From Marsupella aquatica (Eukaryota; Plantae; Marchantiophyta): a stretch of DNA of 64,000 bases. Shown here in pieces: positions 1,129 through 41,900 of the stretch. How positions within the stretch are numbered: position 1 is the stretch's first letter; each line of letters starts with the position of its first letter. The stretch covers positions 13,918,330-13,982,329 of the forward strand of contig OZ316898.1 in NCBI GenBank assembly GCA_973895155.1, read 5' to 3'. Under the pieces are notes generated by a model. That model saw nothing but the letters and a program-made list of their open reading frames with translations. It made no database searches and had not been told where the DNA came from. Both the position numbers and the translations under genes were made by a program.

Positions 1129-2435
1129 TTGAGTTGGATACATCTCATTGGCTTGTTGTGTAACCAATAGGGGTCTCAAACCTCAAACACAGCCTTGATA
1201 ACTTATGAGCATAACAAGTTATAGACTGTCTGCAAAATTCACAATCCACAACTTTTGCCATAATGGAATCATGATTGTACATGCCATGACAGAAAATCAT
1301 TTTAAAGGGCCATTCATTGTTAGTAAAGTCTAGTGGAGAAATCAAAAACAAACATATTTACAGAACTGGGAAAAAGGTTACAGCCATTTCTGTATGGCCA
1401 ACAGATATGGTTGGCCAGGAGATTACTATTCATGCATAATAGATGAGGTTGTGCTGAAGATGTACTTGATAAATACATCATGGTGCAAAATATATCTTGA
1501 GTAAAAGATTTTGATTGTTAATAAGATCTCATCGCATCAAAATTGTTGTTGTCAAGTGAAAGATGTCATGACGCAAAAGAGACTACAATCCCCCACCCAA
1601 ATATGACAAAGTGTGTGGGTTTTCTCTTCATTTTTATCATTTTTAATTTTTTTCCCTTTCAAACTTAAACTTTAAAGTGGTTTCCCCTCTCTATTTTTCA
1701 CTGTTTTTTGGTCCCCTCTTTCTCTCATTGATTATGCTATGCACTACCTTATTGATAACATGACTGTGTAATTAAACTTCTATCATTATTACATAGGACC
1801 CCGGCATAGGACTATCATGCAATACAATTATATGGTCATGTCACGTCTTGGTTAATGTTCTGGTTAAACGTATGGCTGACATAGATTTTGCACGTGGTAT
1901 AAAGGACTGCTCAAGTTTCAAAAACATCCAGCTCATAAGCTATGTCTAGCTCCAAAAACCGGGCCAAGAATTAAAACCTATAATATATATACAAGGTCCT
2001 GCCATGTTTTAGAGTGGTAGTTATTAAAAATCTAATGTTTGCAGTGCCAAAACTAATCAGTCTGTGAGAAAGCAACAAACAAAATCTAAGAATGTATGTA
2101 GAAACCGGATAGAGATAAGATGAAGGAATCCAGGAAATGGAGGATTGGGTACTAATCAGTCTATTCATTAAAACTGGAAAATTCTTTGATCTTTGGACAT
2201 TTAGGCACCAAAAAATATATATTTGGGCACAAGAATTGTACATTTGGGCAATGGGAGTTGTACATTTGGGCACCAGATGTTGTACATTTGGGGGATCAAG
2301 ATTGTACATAGGAGAAAATGAAATAATAATTTGGATTCTAAAGAAAAACATTTGGGTGATAATAATGTAAAATATGTTGGATAAGAAGTAGAACTTACTT
2401 ACATTGATTCAATTTGACTAATAGAATAGAAGTGT

Positions 2436-3050: not shown

Positions 3051-6000
3051 TTACTCAACAATCCCTTCCATGTAGGTTTTGAGTGTTTTCAAAACATTTT
3101 TGGGAATGGTCAAACCTCTATCAATTATATTTTCTTCTCTAGAGCGTGACTTGAATCCATACATAGCAGAATTAGCAAATTGTCAACGTTCAGTGGCACT
3201 GTCAAACCCGGGATCCACCTCCCAAGTCTTAGTGGTCTGAAAGCAATGTGAATATCGCACATGATTCAGTGCATCATGCTTACCATGTTTAGGCCTCCAC
3301 CATTGCACTTGGAACATAGGAGCATACCGTGTACTAGTAGGAGAATTCTCATTGCATTGCAAGTCTCCTGAAGGAACTTCATGGTTTGGGTCCACAACAC
3401 CCAAAGCTCTCACCAACTAGAAACGTTCTTTCCCATTCTTCTTTTCCCATTCATCCTCTGGACGGAGAAATACAAAGTGACCCTCTTGAATGTCTTGCAG
3501 AGGAATCCAACGTGCAAGTTCTTGCTTGTATCTAGCGGCAACAAATGTTGCAGCTTGATCCTCCATCTCTTCCAGGTACTCATTCTGAAGCTCCACCATT
3601 TGTGGATTCTATGTACTACTAGTAGGCTCCCCCAATGGTTCAGAGGTTCCTGTACTATTAACCTTGTAACCAGTTCCGTGGTTGGTTTTTGGCCAGAATT
3701 CATATGTCAATGCTAACTGTATTTCTGCCTCTCCTTCAATTGTAAGCTCCCCAGATAATACTTGCACCACCATCTCCCAATATTTCACCAAAGGAAACCG
3801 CTCACGATATGTTGTAGAGGTCTCATCCTTACAACTCTTCTTCAAAAACTCAATGTAACGATTAAGGAATGGGATGATTTCTTCAACCTTGCCTCGTACA
3901 TCCCCGGAGATGGGTTTTGCAAATGGTTGACCTTCTGGTAAAATGAGAGCATTGGTGCTGGAATCAGTTCTCCAAATGGACCTTCCGGTTGGAGGGTACC
4001 AAGGTTGTTTCACATGTGCTTTGTATTGATATATTGGAACATTATCTCTCATAGAGAAAAGAAATGCCACTGGTTTTGAGTGACCCTCTATGTCTTTTAC
4101 CTTGAAAGTTTTCAAAAACTCTTTGTAAGCTGCAACCTCTTGGATCAACCGTGGGATAGGATGAATGCTTTCACACTCCCAAACCTCAGCCATCAACCCC
4201 AAGAGGGTAGAAACCTCCTTGTACTTCACTTGGTTGGATACTTTCGAAAACAATGCATCAACATCCTCATGGGTGTGACCAACCATGAGAAACGACATCT
4301 GCACTGTTTCAAAAACCCCTCTACTAACAAGCTCACTGCAAAATGCCATCATGTACTGGTTTTTGTTATCTTTCCCTGAATTATCCATTTGCAAGGTCAG
4401 GTGCCTTGGCAATGGTTTGAAAGAGGTAGACGTAGCCTTGGGATCAACACCAAAGTCGTCTTGGTCATCTTCAGCTCCTTGAAATCTAGCAATTGAGACT
4501 TTTTTGGGTTCTAAGTAACCTGTGAGAAATGCTTCAAAGTCCAAAAGAGATTGAAAAATCAGCCTCGTTGCAGCCCAATATAATCCTTCAAGGAGGTCTC
4601 CAGATTTGTCCCCCTTGTAATCCTCCAGATCTCTAAGGCACTTGGCCAATGATGTCACTGTGAAGTCTGCATCTCCCGGCCAAAGCCCAGTGAAACTGAA
4701 GTGAGCATACACTCCGGGATCCCTTCCATGGGTCAACATCCCAGTGAGCGCAATGGGGAGCGGTTGACCACTACCAGACAATGATTTAGGAGTGGGGACC
4801 AACCTAGGGATCCATGTCTTGGCCTGGTCCATCTTGTCATGTATAATGCAAAGATAGTTCTCAGGATCCTTCTTCGCAAGAACCCTATGAGCATAGTAAA
4901 CATATCTCCTAGACATTTGCTCACGAAGATGGCGAGCTCTTCTTTCCTCAATCTCTAAACGCTCTTTCTTTCTCTTCTCCCGCATCAACTGATCTTTGAA
5001 CTCAGTGCAAAGTGTACACTTTGCAAATGCACTTCCCTTGTGAAAGTCAAAATTCATGAAGGACTCACTCCAGAGTTTATACATAGTGTTTTCACTCACC
5101 TTCACGTAGCCATCTAATTCCATTTTTGAATATACCTCTTCAAAAATCTCTTTCTTCGTGAAACAAAATGGAAGTCTGTACTCAACCGTGTCAGTCCCGT
5201 GAGACCCTCCATAGGGAAGATGCGACATGGGTTCTGCGTTTTGGGTTAGAATGGACTCCAACAAAGCACGAGCATGCAAGGTGCTTCCCCGTGTCTTGTG
5301 TGAACCCTTGTTTCCGTGGAATCCAACCGTGCAACTTGCTTCATATTGATTTTTGTAATCATAATACTTGGCACTGCTGAATCCATGCATTTTAATAAAT
5401 GCACCCTTGCAAACAAGTCTACTTCCTACAACAAAATATCCTTTTGTCTCCACTTCCTTCTCCCTACAGCCAAAAAGAGTGAGAATGTGACTGGTTTTGT
5501 TGTCGCTTGACATCCCATGGTATTCCCTCCTTTCGCCTGCAGGTCTTCTCTCGGCATGCTGAGGCAACACTACAACTTACAACAACCTTCTCTTTGGATG
5601 GAGTCGATTTCCTCCTCTGTGATTTTCAGTATCGCCCGAGACTCCAAGTGCTTCTTCCTTTTTTCATATGGGTTGACCTTCGTTCTCTTGATGTAATTAT
5701 ACGCGCGCTCCAAAAACTCAGTGTCACCTTTCATATCTACCTCTAGATGATCTCGACCATCAATAATTGGTTTTAGAGAAACCTCTTCAATGAGATCCAG
5801 AAGAAAAATACCCCTTGATATCAACAGAAGTGAACGGACGGCCCACTTAACAAGACCAGGCACTCCTGGGGAGATATTTGGGAAAAATAGAGGGTCAATC
5901 ACGCGTGTGATAGCAAGCCCAACGTGATCTGGTCCAAGAACATCATCATCAATTGCACCTGACTCGAAAGGAACTGTGATGATGCCAACCCCCACTTTGG

Positions 6001-6102
6001 TCCGATTATCCTCAGCATACAATTCCACCTCCTCGGTCATCCAATTAGAACGCAAACTATAATCCTTGAAATTATAATTTGAAAAAACATCCTGTGTGGA
6101 CA
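3051..6102 (-). pseudogene. Sola-like (DUF7869-type) DDE transposase, central and 3' part, disrupted
   Basis: ORFs 5570-6127, 3609-5570, 3417-3599 and 3183-3416 form one gene broken by stops and frameshifts. Motifs: CTLC, IIHDKMDQ, LQMDNSGKDNKN, FLMVGHTHEDVDALFS. The frame continues across the GGTCG TSD into 30236-30872. Confidence 0.75.
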
Positions 6103-6107
6103 GGTCG

Positions 6108-7752
6108 TGTGACGGGGTCCCCGTCACTCGAAATCACAAATAATGGGTTGCAGAGGGGTGTGCCTTGTTAATAGCCACTGTAAATAAGCCGTTTTTAAAT
6201 TTTTTTAGTTAATTCTGCCATTATAGGTTGATGATGCCCCGGGTGACTTTATATTCTTTCTCTCATAACAGTTCTAAGATTTGCGCCGACCTAAGCGGGC
6301 AAATATTTTGGGACCTTAAAAAGTGCTAGGGCCAACCCCATAGGACTTACCATTTTGCTTGAGCTATCGTTGCGACCCCCTTGTAAAAAGAGGAATAAAA
6401 GGGAGCTTTGGGGGGGAATTAAAATTCCCCATTAAGGGGCACCGCGAGTACTAGTGAGGAGGCCGGGGATAAAGGAGGCTGCGGGGGGGGGAATTAAATG
6501 CCCTTATGGTGGCCTGGCATGGGGCGAGCCGAGCGCGCCCCGCGAGTGACCAGGTGGCGCCCGGAAAACCTAGACCCTTGCATAGGGAGGCACGCCGCGC
6601 GAGCCAGAGCTAGGGGGTACCGCGAGCCGGGAGGAGCCCACGAGTGGGCAAGCCCAGGTGGTGCTACCGGGGCGCGAGGCAAGTCGGGGCGCAGCGCAGC
6701 CGGGCCGCAGCCGGTGCCAGGAGGAAAGGGTCGCAGAAGGGGGAAAGCTCCCATGAGCCGGGCCCAAAGGAGGGGTGAGTCAGGTGGGGGGTATTAAACC
6801 CTTCCGCAAGGAGGGAGCAGGACCGGGCGTGCCCTGCATAGGGCCGCGTGCATCTGGGGTCCGCGAGTTGGAGGAGGAGGAGGGCTATCCAGTGGTGAAC
6901 TCAGAAGTGCAAGTGGAAGGGCACCTAGTTTCGGCCATTGTGGGGTTCCTTGCAATTTCACGGTTCACGGAGTAATGTTGGGGCGCCGTCGAAGGCACCA
7001 TCGGCCCCATTGTTAGTTTAGGGTTTAGGGTTTTAGAAGCATGTGTGTGCCGCATGCTTTTAGTTTAGGGGTTCCTTAGTGAAGGGTTTAGCGGCGCCGC
7101 TAGGGTAGCCGCCATCCTTGTGACCCCGTGAGGGGTGCTTTGGTGTGTTGTTTTGAGTATTTAGGGGGAAAGCCCCGTAGTAGTGAGGGGTAGTGAGGGG
7201 GGAACTCAGTCTAGTGGTTGCTTAGGGAAGTTAGCTCAGAGCCAGAAGGGGCAATCAAGCCAGAGTAGCGAGGTAGAGGTGTAGCACTTGCCCTAGTGAG
7301 GCAGTAGTTGGGCAGACGGCAAGAGGCCCGGTTGTCCTTGCAATGTGTTACGACATTTTGCCAAAAGATATGGATTTGGTTTGATTCCTCAAGTTTTGGT
7401 GTGGCGTTTTGGTGTGTGCTGGTTCACGATTGTGTTCTTTCCCCAAGAAGTGTCTAAAGAATACTTGCACAGATTGCTCGACCATGTGAGTAGGGGGGAT
7501 GGTGACAGCACTCCTCCAGCGACCAATAGGAGTGTGTGTGTGGCGTAGTCCATGGGACTTGATCAAAAGCAACAGGACTAGTCGGTAGACTTGATCAAAA
7601 ACTACATTTCTGGGAGCGGAAATAAACATACTCATCCTACATGCAATAGAATCCTAATAGCGTCCCTCCACGTTCCTATCATACGATAACAAACGATTTT
7701 AGTAGGAGTAAATACATATTTGTCGTGTAAATCGTTTGATAAGCAGGTGACA
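6108..7752 (+). repeat. 5' LTR (1645 bp, internally deleted)
   Basis: Starts TGTGACGGGG, ends GGTGACA; colinear with 25926-26671 plus 29379-30235. Confidence 0.93.
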
Positions 7753-8010: not shown

Positions 8011-8612
8011 ATGCCGAGAGGAAGAAGGGGAGGAAGAGCAAGCTCCCAACACTCACGTACGCCTGAGCTAAACCGAGTGCCCTCTTGGGTTGCGGCCGAA
8101 GAACGATTACGGCTTGCAGAAGAGAGGAGGTTGCCACGGGAGCTGGAAGAACAAGTTGGTGTGCTGCAAGAAGGGTCTGAACACAACAAGGCCATACACC
8201 CCGATGAAGAGCCAGACATAGATCACGTGCTAGAAGAAGGGGAGCCCTTTGTGTTGGTGCAGTCTGAGTTACGGCCAAATCTGATCCCAAAGCTCACTGC
8301 ATTGCCACAAATCATCTCACACCTATCAGCATTGCCGTTACCGGTAGCCCAACGTACGCCATTACCGCCTGTGTTGATACGGGGACCAGCTGCACCAATG
8401 GCAGCTGCTCAACGTACCCGTGTTCAGTACGTACCCTTCAAGGGAAGACCAAAAGATGACCCAGACGAATGGATCAAAGAATTTGAAGGGATTGCTGAAG
8501 CCAATGGAGAATCTGCCCACAAGCTCACTATCATTCCTGGAATGATGAGGGGGGAGGCAGGCCCATGGTTCATCTCGTTGCTACCCAACGTGAAAGCTGA
8601 TTGGGCTTTGTT
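8011..8612 (+). pseudogene. gag: gag, 5' part (interrupted by CACTA)
   Basis: FKGRPKDDPDEWIKEFE...W capsid-like motif; removing the CACTA and one GTT restores DWALF-KQSFLKEF in frame with 18304. Confidence 0.85.
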
Positions 8613-11324: not shown

Positions 11325-12690
11325 AGCTATCCAACACCAAGCGCGCGCAAGCTCTCCTCCTGCCCTCCCTCACTTCAAAAAACGTCGAATGGGCCTTGTA
11401 ACCCGGCGGGAAGGTCCGAATGCCCAGACAAAACACATTTGCGACGCAGTCCGCATCGCAATTTGTGAATCAGCCCGCTTCGCAACTAGTATCTCAACTT
11501 TCCAAAACCAATGCGAAACCACACGCTTCGCAAAGCCTTCGCAAAGCTGCAGACACGCGAAAAAATGCTCTCAGGCTCTGTTTTTCCGAAGCTGTTGCGA
11601 AACATTTTGCTTCGCAAATAATGTGACCAAATTCTGAAGCAGGTTGCGAAGCAGGTCGGTTCTCAATATCGTGGCAATTCCTGGCGAAATTTTTTTTCAC
11701 ATTCTTTCCCTCCTCCTTTTGTTTAGGCCATGTAAGTTATACTATGCCCTTTTGTGTAATTAAGAAATTCCGCCGTTTCAAATCCCGATGTTTGTTAGGG
11801 TTGGGTCTTGGATGAAGCTGGTTTTTTTAGGGGTTAAAAGCGAGATTACCAGTCAAACCTTCCGTTTTTTAAGCTATACATGGTGTGGGTGTAGGCTAAT
11901 TTTGATAAGAGTTGGGTTTTGGTTTAAAATTAATAAGTGAGGAAAGGGTTTAGGATTAAAGTTGGGTTTGGGTTTAAGGTTTAAGTCTTTAATTTTGGGT
12001 TTAAGCAGGGTTTGCATTTATGGTTGTAGGCTTTTAGGGTTCAAGCAAGGGTTTAGGGTTTAAAACAAAAGAGAGGAAGGGGATTGGGAGTGAGGGTCTA
12101 GGTTTTTGTAATAGGTCAGAGGTTTGGGGGTGAGGGTTTGGAAAAGGCAAAGCAAGGTTAGATGAGATTAATGTTTTAGTTGTTTTACCATGGGTTTTAT
12201 GGGTTTTAATGGGTTTTATGGATCTTTTGGGTTTTAATGGTTTTTCCATGGGTTTTATGCTAACAAAGGAGGAGGAGCTATGACAACTTGCAGGGTGCGG
12301 CACTTTTGCATGAATTGATACTAGCTAATGCGTATGCATCGTATGAGCCCCGGCATCTGGAGGTACGGACTAAAATAGATGGGTCTAGTTAGGCTTATTC
12401 ATGTAATTAAAATTTTTGGTTCCCACTATCTATAAAGAGGACATGTATGTAAGGTGTTCGCTTTGTGTACTTGCAGCTTTTCTCATACTTCCAGATTCGG
12501 TTCATTATTTTAGAGCCACAAGACCTATTGGCACCGCTGAGCCTGGGTCTCAGAAAGGTATTTTTTAGTGTTCCTTTTGTGTTTGGTTTCATGTCATCAT
12601 TACTTGAGAACTTACATTTGTCCAGCTTGATATTGTGATGTTATTTGGTAATAACCCCTAACTTGCAAATTATACATCTTTGTAGGGGCA

Positions 12691-28900: not shown

Positions 28901-30235
28901 CGATCCGGTGAAGAGGCGGCCTTATGGAAGGACACCATTGGTGAGGGGTACATCAAGGCGTGGCAAGCCTTGGCCAATTTGAGGAAGCAGGGGAGCACTA
29001 GCACAAGGAGTACCCTGGTGAAGAAGAAGAGGAGTGAAGTGGCACTCACATACTCTAGTGGAGAGTGATGAGGAGGCCCACTCACGGGGCTCAAGCCAGG
29101 GTACCGTGAGTGAAGAGGAGGAGGATTAGAGTGGTCGTACGGACGTGGTTGTAAGGCCCCTTGAATTTCCAACTTTTTTGTGAGGGGTCACTCACGGGCT
29201 TGTTGGAAAGAGCTCGCGGAGCTGAGTCCAACAAGAGGCAGCGCTCCTCAAACGGAGCTAGAATGAGCAAGTTAGGGTCCGACGAAGTTGGGATTACGGG
29301 ATACTGAAACAACCATCACTTGGTCGTCCGATGTCCGTTTCAAGAGCGGTTGAGTGATTCATGATCAGGAGGAGGAGGGCTATCCAAGGGTGAACTCAGA
29401 AGTTCAAGTGGAAGGGCACCTAGTTTCGGCCATTGTGGGGTTCCTTACAATTTCACGGTTCACGGAGTAACGTTGGGGCGCCGTCAAAGGCACCGTCGGC
29501 CCCATTGTTAGTTTAGGGTTTAGGGTTTTAGAAGCATGTGTGTGCCGCATGCTTTTAGTTTAGGGGTTCCTTAGTGAAGGGTTTAGCGGCGCCGCTAGGG
29601 TAGCCGCCATCCTTGTGACCCCGTGAGGGGTGCTTTGGTGTGTTGTTTTGAGTATTTAGGGGAAGAGCTCCGTAGTAGTGAGGGGGGAACTCAGTCTAGT
29701 GGTTGCTTAGGGAAGTTAGCTCAGAGCCAGAAGGGGGCATCAAGCCAGAGTAGTGAGGTAGAGGTGTAGCACTTGCCCTAGTGAGGCAGTAGTTGGGCAG
29801 ACGGCAAGAGGCCGGGTTGTCCTTGCAATGTGTTACGACGTCTTGCCAAAAGATATGGATTTGGTTTGATTCCTCAAGTTTTGGTGTGGCGTTATTTTTT
29901 CTGGTTCACGATTGTGTTCTTTCCCCAAGAAGTGTCTAAAGAATACTTGCACGGATTGGTCGACCATGTGAGTAGGGGGGTGGTGACAGCACTCCACTAG
30001 CGACCAGTAGGAGTGTGTGTGTGTGGCGTAGTCCATGGGACTTGATCAAAAGCAGCGGGACTAGTCGGTAGACTTGATCAAAAACTACATTTCTGGGAGC
30101 GGAAATAAACATACTCATCCTACATGCAATACAATCCTAATAGCGTCCCTCCATGTTCCTGTCATACGATAACAAACGATTTTAGTAGGAATAAATACAT
30201 ATTTGTCGTGTAAATCATTTGATAAGCAGGTGACA
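25926..30235 (+). repeat. 3' LTR (4310 bp, full length, contains an ORF)
   Basis: Same termini as the 5' LTR and followed by the TSD; has 2707 bp (26672-29378) absent from the 5' LTR. Confidence 0.92.
27248..29068 (+). pseudogene. LTR-encoded accessory protein (~600 codons; plant-transposon-protein-like N-terminus plus coiled coil)
   Basis: ORFs 27248-27454, 27455-28771 and 28820-29068 share one frame, split only by TAG at 27452-27454 and 28769-28771; heptad-rich C-terminal half. Confidence 0.7.
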
Positions 30236-30872
30236 GGTCGTTTAGCATATCCTGGGAAGAACTCCTCCGAGTAACATCCTTTAAATTCCAGAATACAAAA
30301 GTGTCCAATGCTTCCTGAACGGTATTGGCTCCATTGTGAGGAAAGGGTAACCTCTTCCTTCCTTGAAAAACTTCACATATTTTCACACTAATCCTAGAAG
30401 TGCCAAGTCTTTCATTGTGACAGGTCTCATCGGGATTTGTCTTGAACACAAATCCACGAGCCACAATCTGATTGCCGATCTAGAGCTGGACTTCATCGCC
30501 AGATATAATCGAGTCTTCAAAACTTCCCAACGAAGATTTGTCTGGTACAAAACCGGGAACCGTATCCTTTGTAGAACAAGAGGCATCCATTTGTGTTGTC
30601 GTTGGAGTTGACTATGACTTCAAATATGCAAAAGAGGCATCCCAAATAATGCAGGAGTCGACAGCATCAAACAGGGTCCTGATCAGCGGCAAAGGGTAAG
30701 GAATTTCCCGTGATCCCTCATAGTACTTCTCAATGAGAACTCGTATACGATTACGTCCCAAATCAACATTACGCACTGAGTCACCCGGGTCAACCTTGAG
30801 GACGGTCCCACAAGCAACTTCCACTCCGTCGATTACGAGGCAAACCTTGTCCCCTCGAAAGAAAATCCCCAT
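30236..30872 (-). pseudogene. Sola-like transposase, 5' part: two Tnp1/En-Spm-like (Transposase_23-like) repeats
   Basis: Pattern V.L.....VA.G.V...DP......LG...I.V.I.......PYP.....TL..A......W occurs twice; two in-frame TAGs; frame runs MLND-LSTQD across the TSD. Confidence 0.7.
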
Positions 30873-30908
30873 TTTGAAAACGTGGTCCAAACTGTTGGAT
30901 GTAGTTAC

Positions 30909-33900
30909 CTTGAGATGATCTCGAGGTAAAGTGACTACAAAAACTAACCAAAAAACCCAAGTGTAGAAGTTTATCCCACAAAATTGTGTGATAGAGAAAA
31001 TAAGAAACTCTTCTACCTCGAGACGATCTCGAGGTAGAAGAGGGACCAAAAACTCCAATATGTAAAAATTCAGAAGTATTTAGCTCAAGACGATCTCGAG
31101 GTAAAATATGAAATCTCACTGAATAGCGAATTCAGATTCTATACCTCCGACTCTCTACAAACTCAATTATAAGAAGGAAAACCGAATGCACCATTATAAA
31201 GAAGGCAAAAGTGAATAAGTTTGAGGATCAAACTTATGACTCGAGATGATCTCGAGCCAAAAAGGACATTGTATTTGACAAAGAAACTATTATGAATAAT
31301 AAGCCACCCAAAATAAGAACATATAAATGGCTCTAGATGATCTAGATGAATGATTTGGTGCAATTAAGAAAGTAGGCTCCCAGTTTACTTCCAGACACTA
31401 AGAAATAGCTTCTAAAATGCCATCAAATAGAGGGAAAAGGCTTCCAAATGGATTTTGACCGACACTAGTATAAGCTGAAAAGGTTTGGTTTTCTAAAAGA
31501 TAGGAGCTCAATTATTTTAGACCTCCTTCAGGGCTTAAAATGATAATTTCTCGAAATATCCTAAACACAAACGTAGAGTCCACAACCCTTGAAAAGAACA
31601 ACAGAAAGAGATCAGAGCAGAAATCTAGAGCCAAAGAGAGGGAGAGGGAGAGGGAGAGAGAGCAGAGAGAGGTAGAGGGAGAAACGAGCGAGCAATGAAA
31701 CGAAATGAGAAGAATGACCCGCTGGAGACCAAAGAGAAGCAATATATAAAACCCTGACAGACAAAAAGGCCAATAAGAAGGCTTGGTTGAACTTGTGTCA
31801 CAGCTAAACTTGCAGCAGGGCTGAAGTATGGATAACAATAATGACAACACGTGTGACCGTAATAATGATTGTACGCACCCAGCAGGTTGCGTGGCAGCCT
31901 GCCTGAGCCTGCACGAGCCCTGGCATGCTTGGCATGGCCAAGGCCGACCCCCGAGGGGCTTATAGTGGCTTCAGGGGTTTGGAATTCCCCATTTTCACAT
32001 TTGCCTCCTCGCCTCTTCGCCTCCTCGCGTCCCTTGCCTCCTTGCCTCTAGATTGTTTCGCGCTCTTGCCTCAGGATCCTTGTATTAGCCTCGAGATTGT
32101 AGAGGGTCGAGATTAGGTTTTTTCCTCAAGATTTTATAGGGTCAAGATTTTGTGTTTAGGCTCGAGCTTCGATAGGGTTGAAATTTTTAGTGTAGGCTCA
32201 AGATTTGTTTTTAAGTTCTCAGCCCGTAGTACGTTCCTCTCTTCAGCTCTTCACCAGCCATGTTGACTGTTGTAGATTTCTCCAAGGAGGACTTCGCTGA
32301 GTACAACCTTGCAACCGTTGGCGAAGAGCTTCAGACCCATCTAGACTCAGCGCATCAGATCCATCGCACCATTAAACGTAATTCATCATCTTTGTTCTGT
32401 TCAGGTTTAACTCGAGATCGTCTCAAGCTTCAATTGGTCCACTTGTTTCTGGATTCCTTGGATGCAGTGGAGGCTCAAGATCATCTCGAGCCTATTGATG
32501 TTTTCTGCAATACTTTGCTTCAAAAGTTGTGATCTATCAATTGATTTTGCATTTGATGTAAGTGGCATGAGGCTCGAGATCGTCTCGAGCCAATATGCAA
32601 TTCCTGCATGTGACCTAGTGAGATTTCTTCAAGTTGGAAACCCTTATCCTTCAAAAGTGAAACATCATATCCAAAATATCTAAAATTTCCTTCCTCCAGG
32701 GACTTATGTACCCTCCAACTCGTTCTGATCATTGACATCCGAACGGGTTTGTGGGTATCAGAAGTCAATGGAGAAAGTGGATTTTAATCATTGATTAAAT
32801 ATGATGTTCATTGTTGAATAAGATATTCGGATCACTCGTTTGACATGTTAGGCTCGAGATCGTCTCGAGCCAAATATATCCCTCACCATCTTCCATTATG
32901 GTCATTCGTATCCCTTGGCCAATTTCTTCCAGTTGGAAGGACTCCATGTCGTCTACTTCAATTACTAATATCCTTTTCATTGTGATCCAAGCTTGCCTTT
33001 TGGACCACTTTCTTAGTCCTCCAACTCGTTTGTGAAGATGACAAACCACTGAGTTAGAGGGTTTTGAATGTGGTCGAATAGGTGACATTGGATCATTCTT
33101 GAAAATGTTGTTCGTTAAATTTGACTGGTTCATGATATGCAATGGAATAAAACCTCAACTGATATATATGAGGATCGAGATCATCTCGAGCCCTTGTCTT
33201 TTACTTTTAAACAGATGGTGGCTCGAGATCATCTCGAGCCTATTGTGTTTCCTAACTATTGTGTTATCTTTTTAGATTTTTTGGGTTTGAAATCTCTTTT
33301 TAAATTCCACGAATGAAATGGCATTGGAACATGTAAGACTATTAAACTTAAAAGGAAGACCGAGATCATCTCGAGCCACCTATTTGTTTCTTGGTTTTGT
33401 AGTACATGTTTATGACAATTGCTACATTTTGGCTGTACCAGGTGCGAAATTGGGATCGCCTAATTTGGTAGTCAAAGATGAACATGCAATTGAGGTTTCC
33501 TGCCCTGGACATGGTTTATTTGGATTCTGTTGGGCCATTGAGCTTGCTGAAACTAAAGACATGGAAGGAACTATTATTTGTGTGAAGACGAGGTCTCCAT
33601 CAATTGATCCTCTAGTGTGCAGCCTTCTAGGGCCTGTTGTTTCTATTGTGACGAGTAACGGTAAGGACATGGTTTTGACGGTGGAGAACCACGAGACAAG
33701 GAAGTGGGCTCTAATTAGACTTCATGCCAAAAACTACTCTTGCGATCTTAACATTGAACGTGCAGCCAGGAAACAACTGAGCGTGATATCAATGGGGTTC
33801 TTCCCCGAGGGTTTTACTACAAGTAATTTGCTAGAAGATACTCCTATATCTGGAGCGGACATAATTTTTGGATTCTTTTATTGTCAAAAGTATGGGTTTG

Positions 33901-36900
33901 ATCGTGATGATGCATTCACGACTCCTTTCACGTGGAAGGTTTTGAGACTAATGTCGGAATCCAAATTGGAGGAGTTTGAATCCATATCCCCTGATTTTGT
34001 GTTTGGAGTCGGGGAATTTGACGAGGATGCTTGTAAAAAGTGGGTGTTGTCTCATCGGAGACAAACAGGTAAATTGAAATCTGTAGCTGCGGGAGACAAG
34101 ACGTCCGGTTTGGACAAAAAAGAAGCACAGGTGTCTCAAAAGAGGAAGAGGGTTGAGAAACCCGAAAGCAAAGCGAAGAAGGCTCCACCTCAAAAAAAGT
34201 TCGCGCCGCCCAAGGTAGATCTCATTCCGGCATCTTCCTCGAGTGTGAATGCACATACCGATGATGATGGCACTCCAGGAGATGCTCCGGGAGAAAAGAG
34301 CGTTAAGGAAGGAGCCAAAGTTCTTAAGGAGATTGAGGAGTATTACACATTTGGCATGAATGAAACTTTTGACATTCCTGTCACTAGTATAGATTCGCCG
34401 TCTGCAGTTTTGGTATATAGGATGTTCAATAAAGACCATGCCATGGAGGTCGCAAAATCCATGGTTAGAAACCCTGGAATGGTGCCAGCTGTGGCGGATT
34501 TAATTCCGTATTCAAGAGAGAGTTTGCAGTTGCTCCATTATGAGAATACTGCTGAGGATCGAAAGGAGTTCGAGCCCGGAGTTCGAGTGGGGTGTTAAGA
34601 ATAAGAAGGTGCAGTTTCTTGCAATAAGTGGACAACACTCGGCAAAGGCAGCTGTTTGGATCATAGGTTGGGCTAAGAGCGATGCAAAGTTGAAGGAGGT
34701 CGCGAAGAGTCTGCAATATCGAAAGTCATGAATTCTTTCAGACAGAACTCCAAGAACAATACTTGCTCAACACTCACAAAGGGAAAATGCTGTTAATAAG
34801 ACCATGGAGTATGAGTCCTATTTTCTTGATACTATGGTCCATGCCCGTCGATAGTTTGACGAGTGTGGCCATCCGGAGAGACCCGTGATTGGGTCCAATA
34901 GACTAACGGATCATCAAAAGTTCCAGGTAAATTTGAACTCAAATCCACTTCTAGCTCGAGATTGTCTCGAGCCTCGAGGTCAAGTTTCTGTATTTGATTT
35001 ATCTTCATGTATTCTCCCATAAATTTTACCATAGTTCCTTAATTCTACCTCGAGATCGACTCGAGCCTCAGATTTTCTTTGTACTGTTTGGATCAGGATT
35101 TTATGGCCCTTGCCAAAATAACGACTGGAAAATCCGATCTGAGGAATATGTTTTGGTTGCTGTTTTCGGATGAGAACCTCTTCCGAACTTGGAGACAAAT
35201 GTGCATCGATTGGGTCAAGGGACTTCTTCCGGATGGTCTAGGGGAGTTAGGTTCAAAAATAAATGGGAAATCCCGAACAACAAAAATGATTACGCCGGCA
35301 TTGTTTAGATGCTTTGAAGGAGACCCAAGTAGTGACGACATTCTGAAAGTTTTTACTGCCGTTCAACAACAGAAGGTTTTATTGAAAAAAGACCCAGCCA
35401 ACAAATCTGATGTTCAATCAATGAGTGATATGGCTCATACTTTCAAAGTCATGACCAAGCTGAGGGCAAAAATTGTGGAGTACTTCGTTTTGAAGTATCC
35501 GGATCGGTTTGCCAATTCACTCACTTGGTTTGAGCTAACTCAATTTTTGCCTGCATTTATGGATCGTGGTGAGTTGTCGAAACTTAGACAACTTGCTAGA
35601 GAGGTTTGGATTTCCAACCTCCTAAAGAAATAGGCCAAAAGACCCATTTCTGCAAAGTCTCATTGTTAGGCTTGAGCAGATATATTGCAAGGTATTTGGT
35701 GGGTTGCCTTCAATGGAGGATACTCCTTATCGCACATTTTTTAGCGATAATTTGATGAGGACAATGAAGCCTGAGATTGCCCACTCTCCATTGTCGATTT
35801 TGGTCGTCTTCGACAACAGCAGTGGACAGATGCCAAAATTTTTGTCTTGCTGGAGTATTATTTGCAGATGGCAAACTCGATGGAGCTCTTAGTAATCTTT
35901 TTTGTCTGTCAAGGCCCATTGATAGGCCAGATTCAGGGTGCCTTTGAAAAGATTCGTCGTGAGAAGAAAGTCCACACGAAGCTGGAGTATGGGAGCTACT
36001 ACCGTGATCAGCTGCCCAAGGAGGAGGAAGATTTTCTCATTGGAGCCCGAGACTCAAACATGTTTGGGGGAATTTGTTGTGAAGAGGAACCAGACTGGTC
36101 CCAAATTTTCTTTGATGACTTTTATGCGTTCTGGAACTACAATGAGAAGTAGGACAAAGACTTCACAGTCTTGCCTTTGAAGGCCCCTACTGGGAACAAC
36201 AAAGACCAATCAAAGGGGAAAGATAAACTCGATGAATCCACTGTTGATGTCGAAGTTTTGGAGAAGATGGCCCCATCTTATGAGATGTTCGGTCGGCGTG
36301 GTGGCTTTGTAAATCCGAGAGCAAAGCCTTTGCGAATGACAAAGCGTCTTGTTGATTATTTCTCGTGCCCAGGTCATACAGTGTTGGATTTCTTCTCTGG
36401 AGGACAGACATTGAAAGCTTGTGTCATTCTTGGTCAGGATTGTTTTGTGTATTCGGACACAGCTCAAGAGATGGAATTCACAGAAGCCTTTGCTCAGCTC
36501 CCTCATGACAACAAGCAGGTTTTATATGTGCCACCCAAGGAGCCGTTACCATCTGAGGAAATTACTGCCGGTCCCCTCGTTGTAATAGAAGAGGCGGCCT
36601 TAGACATAGCTCCGGTGGAAGCCAGTGTTTATGAGGAAGTATTTGCAGAGAATTTAGAGCATCGCAAAACGGAGGGCCCGAAAATCACAAGCTACATGGA
36701 AGAGGAGGGTGAAATACTGCCTGAATTTGGAAATGATGCTCGAGATGATCTCGACGTTCCAGGTGTTCCTTCATCAGGTGACCTTGGGGATGCACAACGT
36801 GAACAACAGTCTTCAACCTTGGATGTTGGCTGGGAATCCACCTTGCAGGATGCAATTAGCCAACCAATTCCAAGCCCTCCTCAATTGGATGAGATTTTCT

Positions 36901-38903
36901 CTACTAAGAAAGCTAGTGGCTGCCATACTCCCCCTCAGGACGAGGCAGGTGCATCGTCCTCTCCCTTGGACCAAATGTTTTGCGCTTCAGAGAATAAGCT
37001 TGTTTTCACAGATTCTTCTACTGGAAGCCCCGTAATTCTCCCTTTTGTTAGGAAATTGGGGACTGAAATTGGTAGAACTGGTTACAAATCACTCAAAGCA
37101 AGTGCTACTCATTATGTTTGGACTGATGGACCGTCAAAAGGTCAACAAATCAGTATAGAGTAGTCTGAAAAGATTATTCGATCTAGAAAGTATAGGAAGG
37201 ATAAGTTCAAATTAGTGCCAGTTTGGTCTGAGCCAGCTCTTGTTGAGACCCTTCCCGGAGGGATAAATTTGGACATCCAAAACCAACTTACTAGGAGATA
37301 ACCTTCTAGATGAATTTGGGTCTTTCAGCACGTGAGGTTGAAACCCAAGTTAGTTTGAATAGTCCTGAAATTCAGCCGTCTAAATTATTATGTCTACCTT
37401 CATAGAAATAGGCGGGCCCTTACCAGTTGTGGAGTGCGTCGACAATAATCTCCAAAGATGTCCTGAGATTTCTTCAACTACTGACCTTCAACCAACAATA
37501 GGTATGACGTTGACTGTTGTTCATTCACTTGTGATGCTCGAGATCGTCTCGAGCATTCCTCTGTTTTATCTCCCACAATTCTAACATTGGTGTTCCTTCT
37601 TTGCAGGACCCTTGCCTCCACTTCACGGTCCGATCAGACGGAAGCTATTGATTCTTGACCTCAACAAAATGTGTTGGGATTCTGTCAAAATGCCAAGTTC
37701 CGGACCGCGCCGTAGTGCAACAAGTGTCAAGGGTGTCCACTGGGGGAGACGTGGAGGGTTTAACTTTATGAATGTTGAGCGACCCCATCTTCACGAGTTC
37801 TTAATTGCAGTTTTTTCGTTATTTGATGTTGCCATTTGGACTTGTGCAAGGAAACCCAGGACGGATGAAATGATTCATTTGATCTTCAGTCAAGAAGAGC
37901 GAGAGCAATTCAAGTTTATTCTCACACAAGAAGATACATTCGATACTGGAATCCAAAGGCCTGACATTACTGATGGGAAGGCAAATATTCATTTGAAGGA
38001 TTTGAGGGTGGTTTGGAAACGTTATGGTGGATTATACGACGAAACTAATACACTCCTTCTTGATGACACTCCAATGAAGACATTTGCAAATCCAGAGAAT
38101 TGTGGGTTGTTTCCTTCCTCATTTTCGCATCACTCCACGGATGATACAGTCTTTCCAGAAATACTATGGCCTCTGCTCAGGAAATTGTATCATGCCTTCA
38201 ATCTTCAGCATCCAAAGTGGTCTATGATAAATGTTTTAGCGGACAAAGATCAACAGGCTGCCATTTATGAGTTGTTGATGGAGCGGTGGGGTAGTATGGT
38301 ATGGGTTCATTCGGTTATCCATACAGTCTTGGATGTCACAGTGGACAAAATTCCTTGGGATGTCAAGAATGAAGTGCAACAATTACCACCAATGGAGGAA
38401 TTGACAGAGGAGGCGATCAATGACCTTGCAAAGACGTTAATTGGATATCAGTACACAAGACCCTACAGAGACAATCATCGGGGATTTGTTTCGGAAGTCT
38501 TGAGGTGTAGGGACCTCACCACGAAGTTCTAGAATAGGAAGCCTCTTGATTTCTACAATCGCGATATGAAATATGACCCGTTAGGGTCTAGATTTACTTG
38601 CTCAAATGAATTCTGCGGGGTGGAGGAGCATGAGATTTGGGTCTAGATTATCTCGACCCTACACTGAACAGTTACAATGTGAGTTGTAGATATACATATT
38701 TTTACTCGAAAAAAAGTGAAGCTATGCGTACTATCCATTTGAGTCTAGATGTTGTTGATCCTCTTTTACTTGTAGATATGTTCTTAGAAAAAGGTTATTT
38801 GGGTCTCGACCCTATACAAAGGGAATAGCTAGAGATATAGATTCAACAACGGGTCAAAATTATGTGGATGTGGACCCTACATTTGGGTCGAGATAATCTC
38901 AAC
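30909..38903. repeat. Dispersed 17-bp palindrome CTCGAGAnnnTCTCGAG (~17 copies here plus one at 5741)
   Basis: Exact or near copies start at 30909, 31017, 31084, 31240, 31331, 32411, 32474, 32573, 32853, 33174, 33222, 33359, 34955, 35049, 36739, 37537, 38641 and 38887. Confidence 0.9.
32260..38532 (+). pseudogene. Multi-exon cargo gene with ParB-like, N6/N4 DNA methyltransferase-like and FCP1/NIF HAD phosphatase-like domains
   Basis: ParB-like ~34370-34800 (FDIPV..I...YR...HA..VAKSM; FLAISGQHSAKAA). MTase-like ~36300-36460 (NPRAKP...LVDYFSCPGHTVLDFFSGG..LKAC..LGQ). HAD-like 37607-38200 (KLLILDLN, RPHLHEFL, VAIWTC, LKDL..VW, NTLLLDDTP.K). Introns 34927-35096 and 37502-37606 (the latter phase-compatible); many stops and frameshifts; 5' exons uncertain. 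Confidence 0.7.
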
Positions 38904-41900
38904 ATAGATTTTTACATAGTAATTGATATACATTCAACAACCGGTCAAAACCATCTAGAGCCTGCATTGGGGCAGACGTGGTCTCGACCTTGTAAAAATA
39001 GGTTTTTTACTTTTATAATACATTACCGGTTTACCTTCCGTGTTTGTGTAACTTGGTTATCACGGGTCATTTGAATTTATTATATTGTCTTATTCTATTT
39101 TTTCATTGTTTATATTGTATATAATAAGAACACTTTATTGTCTTTTAATTAATAAGTATTAATAATTGATAACTGAATTATTTAATTAATAATTTGGGAA
39201 TTAGAATTGTAATTTTAGACCTCAAAAAGTGTATAGCCACTAAAATATATGCTTTTGGGGAACAAGTACTTATAGAACTTTTGGGGGTAAAATAAAACAT
39301 TTGAAGGTCAACTTCTGGACTAGAGAAATTCCAGTTTTAATGAATAGTGTGATACTACTTGTACTCCTTTAAAATTCAACCCTCCCCACGATCCACCTCC
39401 CAGATAGTGCTTTTTGCAAAAAACAATGGAACAAAATACAAAACATGGTCTACTTCTCAATTCCCAACAGAGTTTTATGGGTGTGACATTTCTCAGAGAC
39501 TACAAGCCAAAATTAAATTCATTCATTAGACTATCAGGTCAGCAATTCCACCATTTTTTTCTTTTGAAAGCCCAAATCGAGTAACTTATTAGCCTTTGCC
39601 CAAGGGAATGCCCTTGCCCTTTGCCCAAAATGCCTGTCCCATACCACTGTCCATCTTTCCCTCTTCTTGGGCACACACCTCCTTCCCCGAGAATTGAAAA
39701 TTACAGACCTTGGTGCATCTAGGCATCTTTTGCTCTTTCCTTGGGCACAAATGTAGTGCCTTGAAAACTTGAGAACAATATATATTTCACAATTAACTAG
39801 ATCTTTTACACAATGACATTTCTTCGCAATGACAACAACAACATATTTTTTACAATGACATTTATCAACTATATCTTTCTCGTAATGATATCTTTTACAT
39901 AACAACATCTAACCCATGAACAGAATAAATTAGAGTGTTTCCCCCACCCAGGCATTTATCCAGGGTAGATGGATAAGGGCTAGCGGCCGGTTTGCCCTCT
40001 TCAAAAAATAAAACATAAAAAAAATATCAAAGTAGAACATCAAGAGTGTTTTAGTTTGGACCACCACCGGGAGCCACCACCATCACAACGATACAAGTAC
40101 AAAATAGCAACATTTTGAACAGCGAAAGAATGCCTTCCATTAACGATTTACCTAAAGAAAAGGACTGTAAACGAAAAGAAAAGACGGGAAGAACGAAATA
40201 GTACAAAGAGTGAGCAAACGATCAATTTATTAGCAGTATGACTCAGCTTCGAATCTAAAATTGGTCAGCCCTGCAAATCCTCAAGAATCTACTCGCCGGT
40301 GAAATGACCCCACAAACCAAGTATGTGGTGTGAGGTAGTCAAAGCATGTCATCAATTATCCATTCCTAGTAAGTCGAACCTTCATTATCTCCTACTGAGA
40401 GTCAGCCACAGCTTCAAGAGCAGCATTATATATGTCAGGGCATGTACACTCAACGTGCAAGAATGGGAGAAGGAAGCTCGTTGGGCCGAACTGAGGAAAG
40501 TTTCGCAAGGTATTCAAAAGGGTGGCCGCAGTCAGCGAAGAACACTAAAAGAATGATTATAAATGAAGTGATCTCACTCCGTAAGTGATAGATCGAGGGC
40601 GGTTACAGATACTCTGAAAGGGCTCAATTCCTGCCATGGGAGCATTGTTGTTCATACACACTCTGAAAGGGCACTTTCCTGCCATGGGAGCTGCATTGTT
40701 GCTCATACACACTCTGAATAGCGTGCACGATAACGTGATTGCGGATCAATTGGTTGTCTGAATAATTGCAATGGAGCGTGAAATTGTTGCATGAATGCCA
40801 TGTCGGATGTTGTCTGAGTAATTGCAATCTACCATGAATTGTTATGTGAATGCCATATCTAGATGTCTGATTGAGTGTGACCCCGTTGTCGTTGTCGCAC
40901 ATTTAGTCACTTGTCAAATTAATGCCACCTCGCGATTCCCCAGCAATTGACAAGTTACACGAAAAGTGTACTGTCGGTAGGTTGTTTGCCTTCAGCTTCC
41001 TTACAGCACTTCTAACGAACTGTCTTTCATTAAGGTGATGTGAAAGGATTCGAAGACTGAAATAGATTTCTTGTTAACCGAGCTGACAGGGGGAATCCGT
41101 CTACAGTGTTTCTATTTTGACATTGTACTGTGACAGACCTTTCCACTGGTCCCCTCTAAATAATCATAACTTCTCTTTCCGGTACGTGATAGAATAGTTC
41201 AAGCCTATCGAAGACTGTCAAGACGCAACCCGGCTGAAATAGTTCAAGCATATCGACGACTGAGACAGTAGTTTTTGTTCCAGTAGACACCAGGATGAAA
41301 ACCCATTATTTAGCTACAAGACGTTGTGCATATCGCCGAGGGAATCCTTCTAGTCCTAGTTTTGCATGCACAAGAGATGATGTGCAATTGTGCAAGTGAT
41401 TGGTCGATCGGGAGAGGAACAGCTTCGAACCCTGCAGTTTAAATCTTGGCCAGGCATCCGTTTTGGCCAAAGGACATAGCGGATCGAAGCTCCCTCTGCT
41501 AAATTTTACACGGTACCTATGATTTTAAGGATTATGTATGACAATGATCGATAGATCTGTGAGGTGAATTTCTTGGTGCGTTGTCCGCTCTGTCCTCCGC
41601 ACTAAACTATTGAGAGGCTGAAATTGACCTTCCATATGTTTATTCCATGTATTATTTCTGTCAAGGATTCTAGCAAGTATTTTCGCGGTCAGTTACCTTA
41701 TACTCTCGTACTTGCAACTTTTTCTCCTTTTTCTCTTCCTGGCATCTTGACTCCTATTACACACGTCCTTTCAGTTCTGTACTAAACACTAACTGGCATT
41801 AGCAATTCATTATTCTCTCAAACAAAAATTTCAGCTTGGCAATAGTGGTACAGCGTTGTGATGGTCCCGGGTCACCCCCGGGGTCACCCCTACGTTGGCA

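Follow-up and report, generated by a model that had tools for sequence, protein, structure and literature searches.

The window analysed here comprises 64,000 nucleotides from the liverwort Marsupella aquatica (assembly GCA_973895155.1, contig OZ316898.1, positions 13,918,330 to 13,982,329 of the forward strand) and contains two divergent genes, a transposase gene and a second gene that we refer to as cargo, around and within which a short palindrome, CTCGAGA-N3-TCTCGAG, recurs. The two genes and the palindromes together form one cut-and-paste DNA transposon, which spans positions 2155-39353 and amounts to ~13.2 kb once ~24 kb of nested retrotransposon sequence (~6.13-30.1 kb) are removed (Table 1). 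An earlier note on the same DNA, the original prediction, had listed about 18 copies of the palindrome and suggested that they serve as a dimeric protein binding site or as an RNA hairpin signal; that the two genes and the motif make up a single transposon had gone unnoticed there. Here we describe the element, compare it with its relatives and consider what may read the palindrome.

Layout of the element and distribution of the palindrome

The element carries two genes only. Its inverted-repeat termini read ATCA..CTATTCATTAAAACTGGA. Sola1 elements reportedly have a 4-bp target-site duplication, and terminal inverted repeats (TIRs) together with such a duplication, as expected of a Sola1-type element, were found both in the window and in a related element from Calypogeia (locus L007), the TIRs of which are flanked on both sides by ATAA. 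Sola1-type is the putative label used here for the element: Sola1 transposases have an RNase-H-like DDE core, and the Pfam match of the present transposase is to DUF7869 alone. This match (E 1.3e-44) comes from a 653-aa transposase open reading frame (ORF), the homologues of which (n=168) are nearly all from liverworts, namely Riccia sorocarpa and Calypogeia fissa, and measure ~1100 aa with DUF8039 preceding. The term 'DUF7869' is absent from the searchable literature, a literature search for DUF3723 yielded nothing useful, and exact look-up of a 426-aa ORF returned no record. The element family is high-copy in contigs of four public runs, which give no sign of splicing.

Table 1. Features of the transposon, in window coordinates, with supporting matches and counterparts in related loci
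Feature	Position	Strand	Remark
Left target-site duplication ACTA	2151..2154		identical 4 bases at 39354-39357
Left TIR, ATCAGTCTATTCATTAAAACTGGA...	2155..2185	+	inverted match to 39323-39353; near-identical L007 terminus at 1267 and 15178
Transposase gene, 3' exons (DUF7869 core and preceding exon)	3609..6127	-	PF25273, E 1.3e-44
Palindrome in transposase coding sequence	5741..5757	-	peptide GRDHLEV
Transposase gene, 5' exons (DUF8039-like region)	30162..30873	-	tblastn to L003, L007, L002
Five palindromes upstream of transposase start (30909, 31017, 31084, 31240, degenerate 31331)	30909..31347		cluster counterparts: L003 7108-7600, L007 5736-6649
About 7 degenerate direct half-sites, CTCGAGATT-like, spacing 16-21 bp, directly upstream of cargo ATG	32086..32210	+	other family copies alike
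Cargo gene, pseudogene in the window copy (N-terminal region, ISGQHS box, helical domain, methylase-like part, NIF-phosphatase-like part)	32260..38532	+	exon blocks kept in L003, L007, L001
Seven palindromes in cargo intron 1 (32411, 32474, 32573, 32853, 33174, 33222, 33359)	32411..33375		matching arrays: L003 5576-5684, L007 8008-8450
Two palindromes (34955, 35049) in intron ~34928-35096	34955..35065		corresponding intron: 6 copies L003 (3727-3907), 3 copies L007 (10173-10243)
Palindrome in cargo coding sequence, spacer reversed	36739..36755		peptide ARDDLDV; counterpart in L007 coding sequence at 12037
Palindrome in intron ~37164-37611, between methylase-like and NIF exons	37537..37553		corresponding intron: 10 copies L003 (1118-1417), 7 copies L007 (13052-13485)
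Degenerate GGGTCTAGATTATCTCGACCC-type variants past cargo stop codon	38635..38998
Right TIR	39323..39353	-	pairs with 2155-2185
Right target-site duplication ACTA	39354..39357

Seven copies in the window match CTCGAGANNNTCTCGAG exactly, as compared to none in 100 shuffles. When up to 2 mismatches to CTCGAGA-N3-TCTCGAG are allowed, the count is 16, against 0.13 expected, and these lie at the positions originally listed; degenerate extra copies at 31331, 38641 and 38887 bring the total to ~19. The conserved unit measures ~21-27 nt (consensus GGCTCGAGATCRTCTCGAGCC), and beyond ~25 nt the flanks of the copies are unrelated, except in small groups that share a few adjoining bases; the copies do not stem from one recent local duplication. 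The copy at 31017 indeed extends to a 16-bp stem without mismatch (arms 31008-31042), as had been noted.

Every copy lies within the element. None occurs in the nested retrotransposon block, after 39 kb or in 27 kb of flanks, in agreement with the earlier reading, and CTCGAGAT and ATCTCGAG are absent from the rest of the 64 kb. The predicted preference for non-coding parts, including the introns that hold the copies at 34955, 35049 and 37537, holds as well: 14 of the 16 copies are non-coding as compared to ~33% of the element (binomial P 1e-5, on an approximate exon map). A miniature inverted-repeat transposable element or foldback mini-element does not fit as the source: single palindrome copies have no target-site duplication, and none lies outside the element in the 64 kb. 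The window copy of the element differs from other family copies mainly through G>A and C>T changes (window A for family G at 41 places and T for C at 30, against G for A at 12 and C for T at 17), which fits the CpG decay suggested for the variant palindromes; at 35059, where the window has an odd A, all other family copies have T and thereby an exact motif.

Other repeats were also seen within the element. The left subterminal region (2420-2590) holds four tandem 37-bp units, CTAGTAAAGCTTCAATATGATCTCTACCCATATAA, containing ATGATCTCTA, which is similar to the right half of the palindrome, and the spacer between the divergent genes holds a (GAGAGG)n tract (31636-31682) and a GCCTCCTC-type repeat (32000-32048), possibly promoter elements.

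A palindrome kept in place while its letters change

Seven related loci were compared with the window, two from Calypogeia (L003 and L007) and five from Riccia (L001, L002, L004, L005 and L006). Tblastn shows that the two-gene layout is kept in the relatives; L001 and L002 are too divergent for their element ends to be defined. An unbiased count of short palindromes, followed by a cross-table of copies within 1 mismatch, distinguished four types: A, CTCGAGA-N3-TCTCGAG; B, CTCGATA-N3-TATCGAG; C, CTTCGGGACGCGTCCCGAAG; and D, GGCGGAAAAGTAAGGAC-N4-GTCCTTACTTTTCCGCC, with 17-bp arms. Type A is present in the window (14 copies) and in L007 (21 copies, in addition to 2 of type B), type B in L003 (25 copies), type C in L001 and L002 (14 and 13 copies, respectively) and type D in L004, L005 and L006 (36, 11 and 21 copies, respectively). 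The remaining cells of the table are zero, and block shuffles gave ~0 for each element's own palindrome. That is, each of 8 elements from 3 genomes holds 11-36 copies of its own palindrome and nearly none of the others'.

The arrays keep their places although their letters differ. In the window, L003 and L007, arrays coincide in the divergent spacer, in cargo intron 1, in the intron preceding the helical-domain exon and in the one that separates the methylase-like from the NIF exons, each locus holding its own palindromes in the matching introns. The same applies to coding sequence: one codon position in a transposase exon holds the palindrome in three lineages (window 5741, L003 8697, L007 4434), and the peptides encoded there are unlike (GRDHLEV, GRYGIDP and GRDGLDP, respectively), the DNA being in each case the lineage's own palindrome. 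Likewise, the cargo coding copy at 36739 corresponds to L007 12037, which encodes GRDRLEA.

The direction of change can be read from a tree of the DUF7869 part, (window,(L003,L007)), with support 100/99; transposase identity is 79% between L003 and L007 and 66-68% between the window and either of them. Since the window and L007 have form A in common, form B of L003 is the derived one. L003 underwent one symmetric change, left arm G>T and right arm C>A, at ~25 dispersed sites, the coding copy included, where it costs two amino acids (GRDGLDP in L007 versus GRYGIDP in L003); two hybrid sites are found in L007. Taken together, these comparisons of sequence show that the palindrome has held its positions across long evolutionary spans, and that a lineage which alters the letters replaces them jointly across its sites. 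In our reading, the pattern reflects selection that acts on the nucleic acid and on its dyad symmetry, and neither selection on the peptide nor drift.

The Riccia loci also vary in other respects. In L005 (9008-15561), a palindrome array lies upstream of the transposase gene, but there is no homology to the cargo region of its close relatives L004 and L006. In the D subfamily (L004 4257-5788), 17-bp arms, far longer than those of the other lineages, enclose a variable 4-nt centre and repeat with a period of 113-115 bp.

Candidate readers of the palindrome and rival explanations

The cargo gene was searched one exon at a time. A region-limited homology search returned no intact full-length cargo protein, and other searches gave gene models that begin past the ISGQHS box. 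In the window and its relatives, its Pfam matches are limited to a weak one to the methylase family PF01555 (25 bits in the window, under the Pfam cut-off) and, in the NIF-phosphatase-like part, a clear one to PF03031 (E 7.5e-17 in the window). Active FCP/SCP phosphatases carry a DxDxT motif. The NIF-like domain reads LILDLNK both in the window (37612-38532) and in L003 (782-1078), and it is probably not a phosphatase. At the position where DPPY is expected in the methylase-like part, relatives have DFSK, DFSR, DFAR or DFGR, the placement being by eye. Because DLNK replaces DxDxT and these variants replace DPPY, both enzyme-like parts look non-catalytic.

We consider it probable (about 0.62) that the palindrome is the private cis-site of one DUF8039+DUF7869 transposon family, which would be read by an element-encoded dimeric protein, likeliest the cargo protein, and would mark or regulate the family's own copies. 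One palindrome fills the promoter spacer of the element, its introns and two coding spots that tolerate it, and the dimer would recognise it on double-stranded DNA. Once bound, the protein may mark copies of its own element or regulate them, for instance by opposing silencing, as does VANC in VANDALs or as proposed for algal ParB-like accessory proteins. The first candidate reader is the conserved cargo protein, which comprises the ISGQHS box, the helical domain and the methylase-like and NIF-like parts. Inverted-repeat arrays adjoin ParB-like genes in red-algal Plavaka elements, and the Sola1 element of Ectocarpus carries an opposite-strand ParB-like and methylase gene. ParB proteins combine an N-terminal domain bearing a GxxR box with a helix-turn-helix DNA-binding domain; the conserved FLAISGQHS(A/S)RA box of the cargo protein resembles a ParB box by eye. 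Of the two roles named in the original prediction, the dimeric protein binding site is thus the one retained here, as a candidate site with which the confinement to the element, the non-coding placement, the positional conservation and the symmetric arm change are consistent.

Several observations weigh against this reading. The window copy's cargo gene is broken by a frame-shifting 13-bp direct duplication, GGAGTTCGAGCCC / GGAGTTCGAGTGG (near 34563-34588, within 34553-34590), just before the ISGQHS box, with more stops downstream. No ParB match was obtained in Pfam (E up to 10, window exons and intact relatives), PHROGs or NCBIfam, nor by phmmer and profile searches against the PDB, and an atlas lead to ParB_N was weak (0.88). 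Structure prediction was likewise of little help: the AlphaFold model of the isolated domain has a pLDDT (predicted local distance difference test) of 44, the N-terminal part of the relative P0142 is poorly modelled, Foldseek found nothing below E 1 for it, and VIA-align of the P0142 model placed KorB at rank 4 with Z 4.0, within noise. L003-specific substitutions are unclustered in every protein block scanned, with a single palindrome switch to compare, and therefore no one protein is indicated as the reader. Moreover, the 17-bp arms of the Riccia D subfamily are long for a protein half-site, and an RNA role must be weighed, since all copies may be transcribed. As for the damage to the gene, the Q of the ISGQHS box is replaced by a stop codon in L003, so that the window and L003 copies are pseudogenes disrupted near one shared spot.

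It is also conceivable, albeit unlikely, that the palindromes are sites at which the transposase assembles a transposition complex. The En/Spm and Ac/Ds elements possess private repeated short sites, in both orientations, within a few hundred bases of their ends, which are bound by TnpA and Ac transposase, respectively. The liverwort transposase has N-terminal DUF8039-like repeats, Riccia elements carry copies directly past the transposase stop codon, and L005 retains its array without a cargo gene. However, the liverwort sites are internal and element-wide: in the window and L007 they occupy spacer and introns, the clean copies closest to the termini of the window element lie at distances of 3.6 kb and 1.8 kb, and L007 has none within 1.6 kb of either end. 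This argues against transposase sites of the classical subterminal kind. In addition, Plavaka, which has an unrelated transposase, also shows inverted-repeat arrays beside ParB-like genes (10.1101/2025.02.11.637652).

Somewhat less probable still is that the palindromes act as RNA hairpins in introns and untranslated regions of the element's transcripts, e.g. as a protein-binding or processing signal, the second role originally suggested. Every copy folds stably into a stem-loop, with energies of -12 to -32 kcal/mol and z of -3 to -10. Transcripts may run through all of the copies, and the arms are constant and the spacer letters variable; Rfam gave no match at the gathering score in the window. 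The spacer also follows transcription, as had been claimed, in the window copy: read on the sense strand of each gene, it is TCG, TCA or TTG in 15 of 16 copies, 36739 being the exception (scored as 14 of 16, binomial P 0.004, or 0.04 with ~9 independent copy groups). As a conserved property, however, this polarity fails. The A-type palindromes of L007 have the opposite spacer at three comparable sites, namely two introns and the coding copy, and in its 35-bp tandem array (8055-8450) TCG and CGA spacers are intermixed on identical flanks of one direction; the spacer can therefore switch orientation, and its orientation is not conserved. Rather than a signal, the polarity probably records how arrays grew from few founder units, and the flips suggest a process specific to palindromes, for instance template switching. 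One-arm changes also fail to favour G-U wobble on the sense strand over A-C mismatch (A-C versus G-U, 3 versus 1 in the window and 6 versus 3 in the L003 cargo region, both small counts). Finally, the stems are mostly 7-12 bp, which is too short for known dicing substrates.

That the palindromes lack a function altogether, as would a very small selfish palindrome or minisatellite whose local spread is driven by slippage and gene conversion, appears very improbable. Tandem arrays are indeed common (periods of 35, 36, 72 and 113 bp), and some of the window copies have flanks in common within small groups. Yet arrays stand at matching introns in elements whose transposases are 66-68% identical, two coding positions retain the palindrome at amino-acid cost, ~25 dispersed sites changed jointly in L003, and single copies lack target duplications. 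Least credible of all is a methylation target of the cargo's own amino-methyltransferase domain in the style of restriction-modification: CTCGAG and GATC do lie within the palindrome, the motif-I region gives weak PF01555 matches (21-25 bits) and the Ectocarpus accessory protein is termed an N4C/N6A methylase (PMC12477816), but every such match is under the Pfam cut-off and, except in the relative P0137, restricted to motif I, relatives have the DFSK, DFSR, DFAR or DFGR variants at the expected DPPY site, and both CTCGAG and GATC are missing from the Riccia palindromes.

Comparison with known systems

In the bacterial SopB-sopC system, partition sites are arrayed and replicon-specific. The ParB-parS systems resemble it in that short palindromes, often arrayed, are specific to the ParB of their own replicon (10.1101/2025.02.11.637652). 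The liverwort elements share short, palindromic, arrayed and element-specific sites with these systems, but their two genes include no ParA-type ATPase, they reside in a eukaryotic chromosome and they give no sign of a partition role. We would venture, tentatively and with the odds somewhat against it, that land-plant transposons recognise themselves through a code of protein and palindrome that descends from bacterial ParB-parS-like systems. A single base changed symmetrically in both arms at all sites, coding ones included, would then create a new private specificity and free sister families, for example L007 and L003 of one Calypogeia genome, from each other's or the host's regulation.

Two papers on giant algal transposons were the only results of a literature search on Marchantia DNA transposons with ParB accessory genes (PMC12477816, 10.1101/2025.02.11.637652). 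Sola1-1_Ec32 of Ectocarpus has an opposite-strand gene that combines ParB-like and N4C/N6A methylase parts (PMC12477816), and in Plavaka elements of Bostrychia inverted-repeat arrays lie beside a ParB-like gene, PAG3 (10.1101/2025.02.11.637652). That the algal ParB-like protein binds its own transposon is the authors' proposal (10.1101/2025.02.11.637652), which rests on weak homology. The liverwort element shares with Ectocarpus the Sola1-type and an opposite-strand accessory gene with a ParB-like box and a PF01555-type methylase-like part, the proteins being compared by description, and with Bostrychia the inverted-repeat arrays. It differs in that its cargo adds a NIF-phosphatase-like part, that its host is a land plant and that its palindromes extend across all introns rather than sitting next to a single gene; palindromes go unmentioned in the Ectocarpus paper.

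The VANDAL elements of Arabidopsis are the sole transposons with demonstrated binding to their own sequence (10.1101/2025.02.11.637652). Their VANC protein, the functional analogue studied in most detail, removes methylation (Hosaka et al. 2017, PMC5735166). The motifs bound by VANC21 are specific to its family, often tandemly repeated, and located in the non-coding DNA of the element that encodes it, namely in introns, between genes and at the termini (PMC5735166). VANDALs are Mutator-like, whereas the liverwort transposase belongs to DUF7869 and not to Mutator-like elements; homology to VANC was not detected in the cargo, whose exons were compared with Pfam only; and VANC motifs are non-palindromic, whereas the liverwort sites are dyad-symmetric and also occur in coding sequence. 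Both systems have in common an accessory protein encoded by the transposon, own-family motifs in introns and spacers, tandem repeats, and a motif that diverges together with its family. The liverwort elements add a clean comparative case, with fixed places, changing letters and upkeep despite amino-acid cost, and the sister elements of one Calypogeia genome, which differ by a single symmetric arm change, provide a natural swap pair for identifying the reader protein. They bear on how transposons distinguish their own copies from others, and on how such recognition codes evolve.

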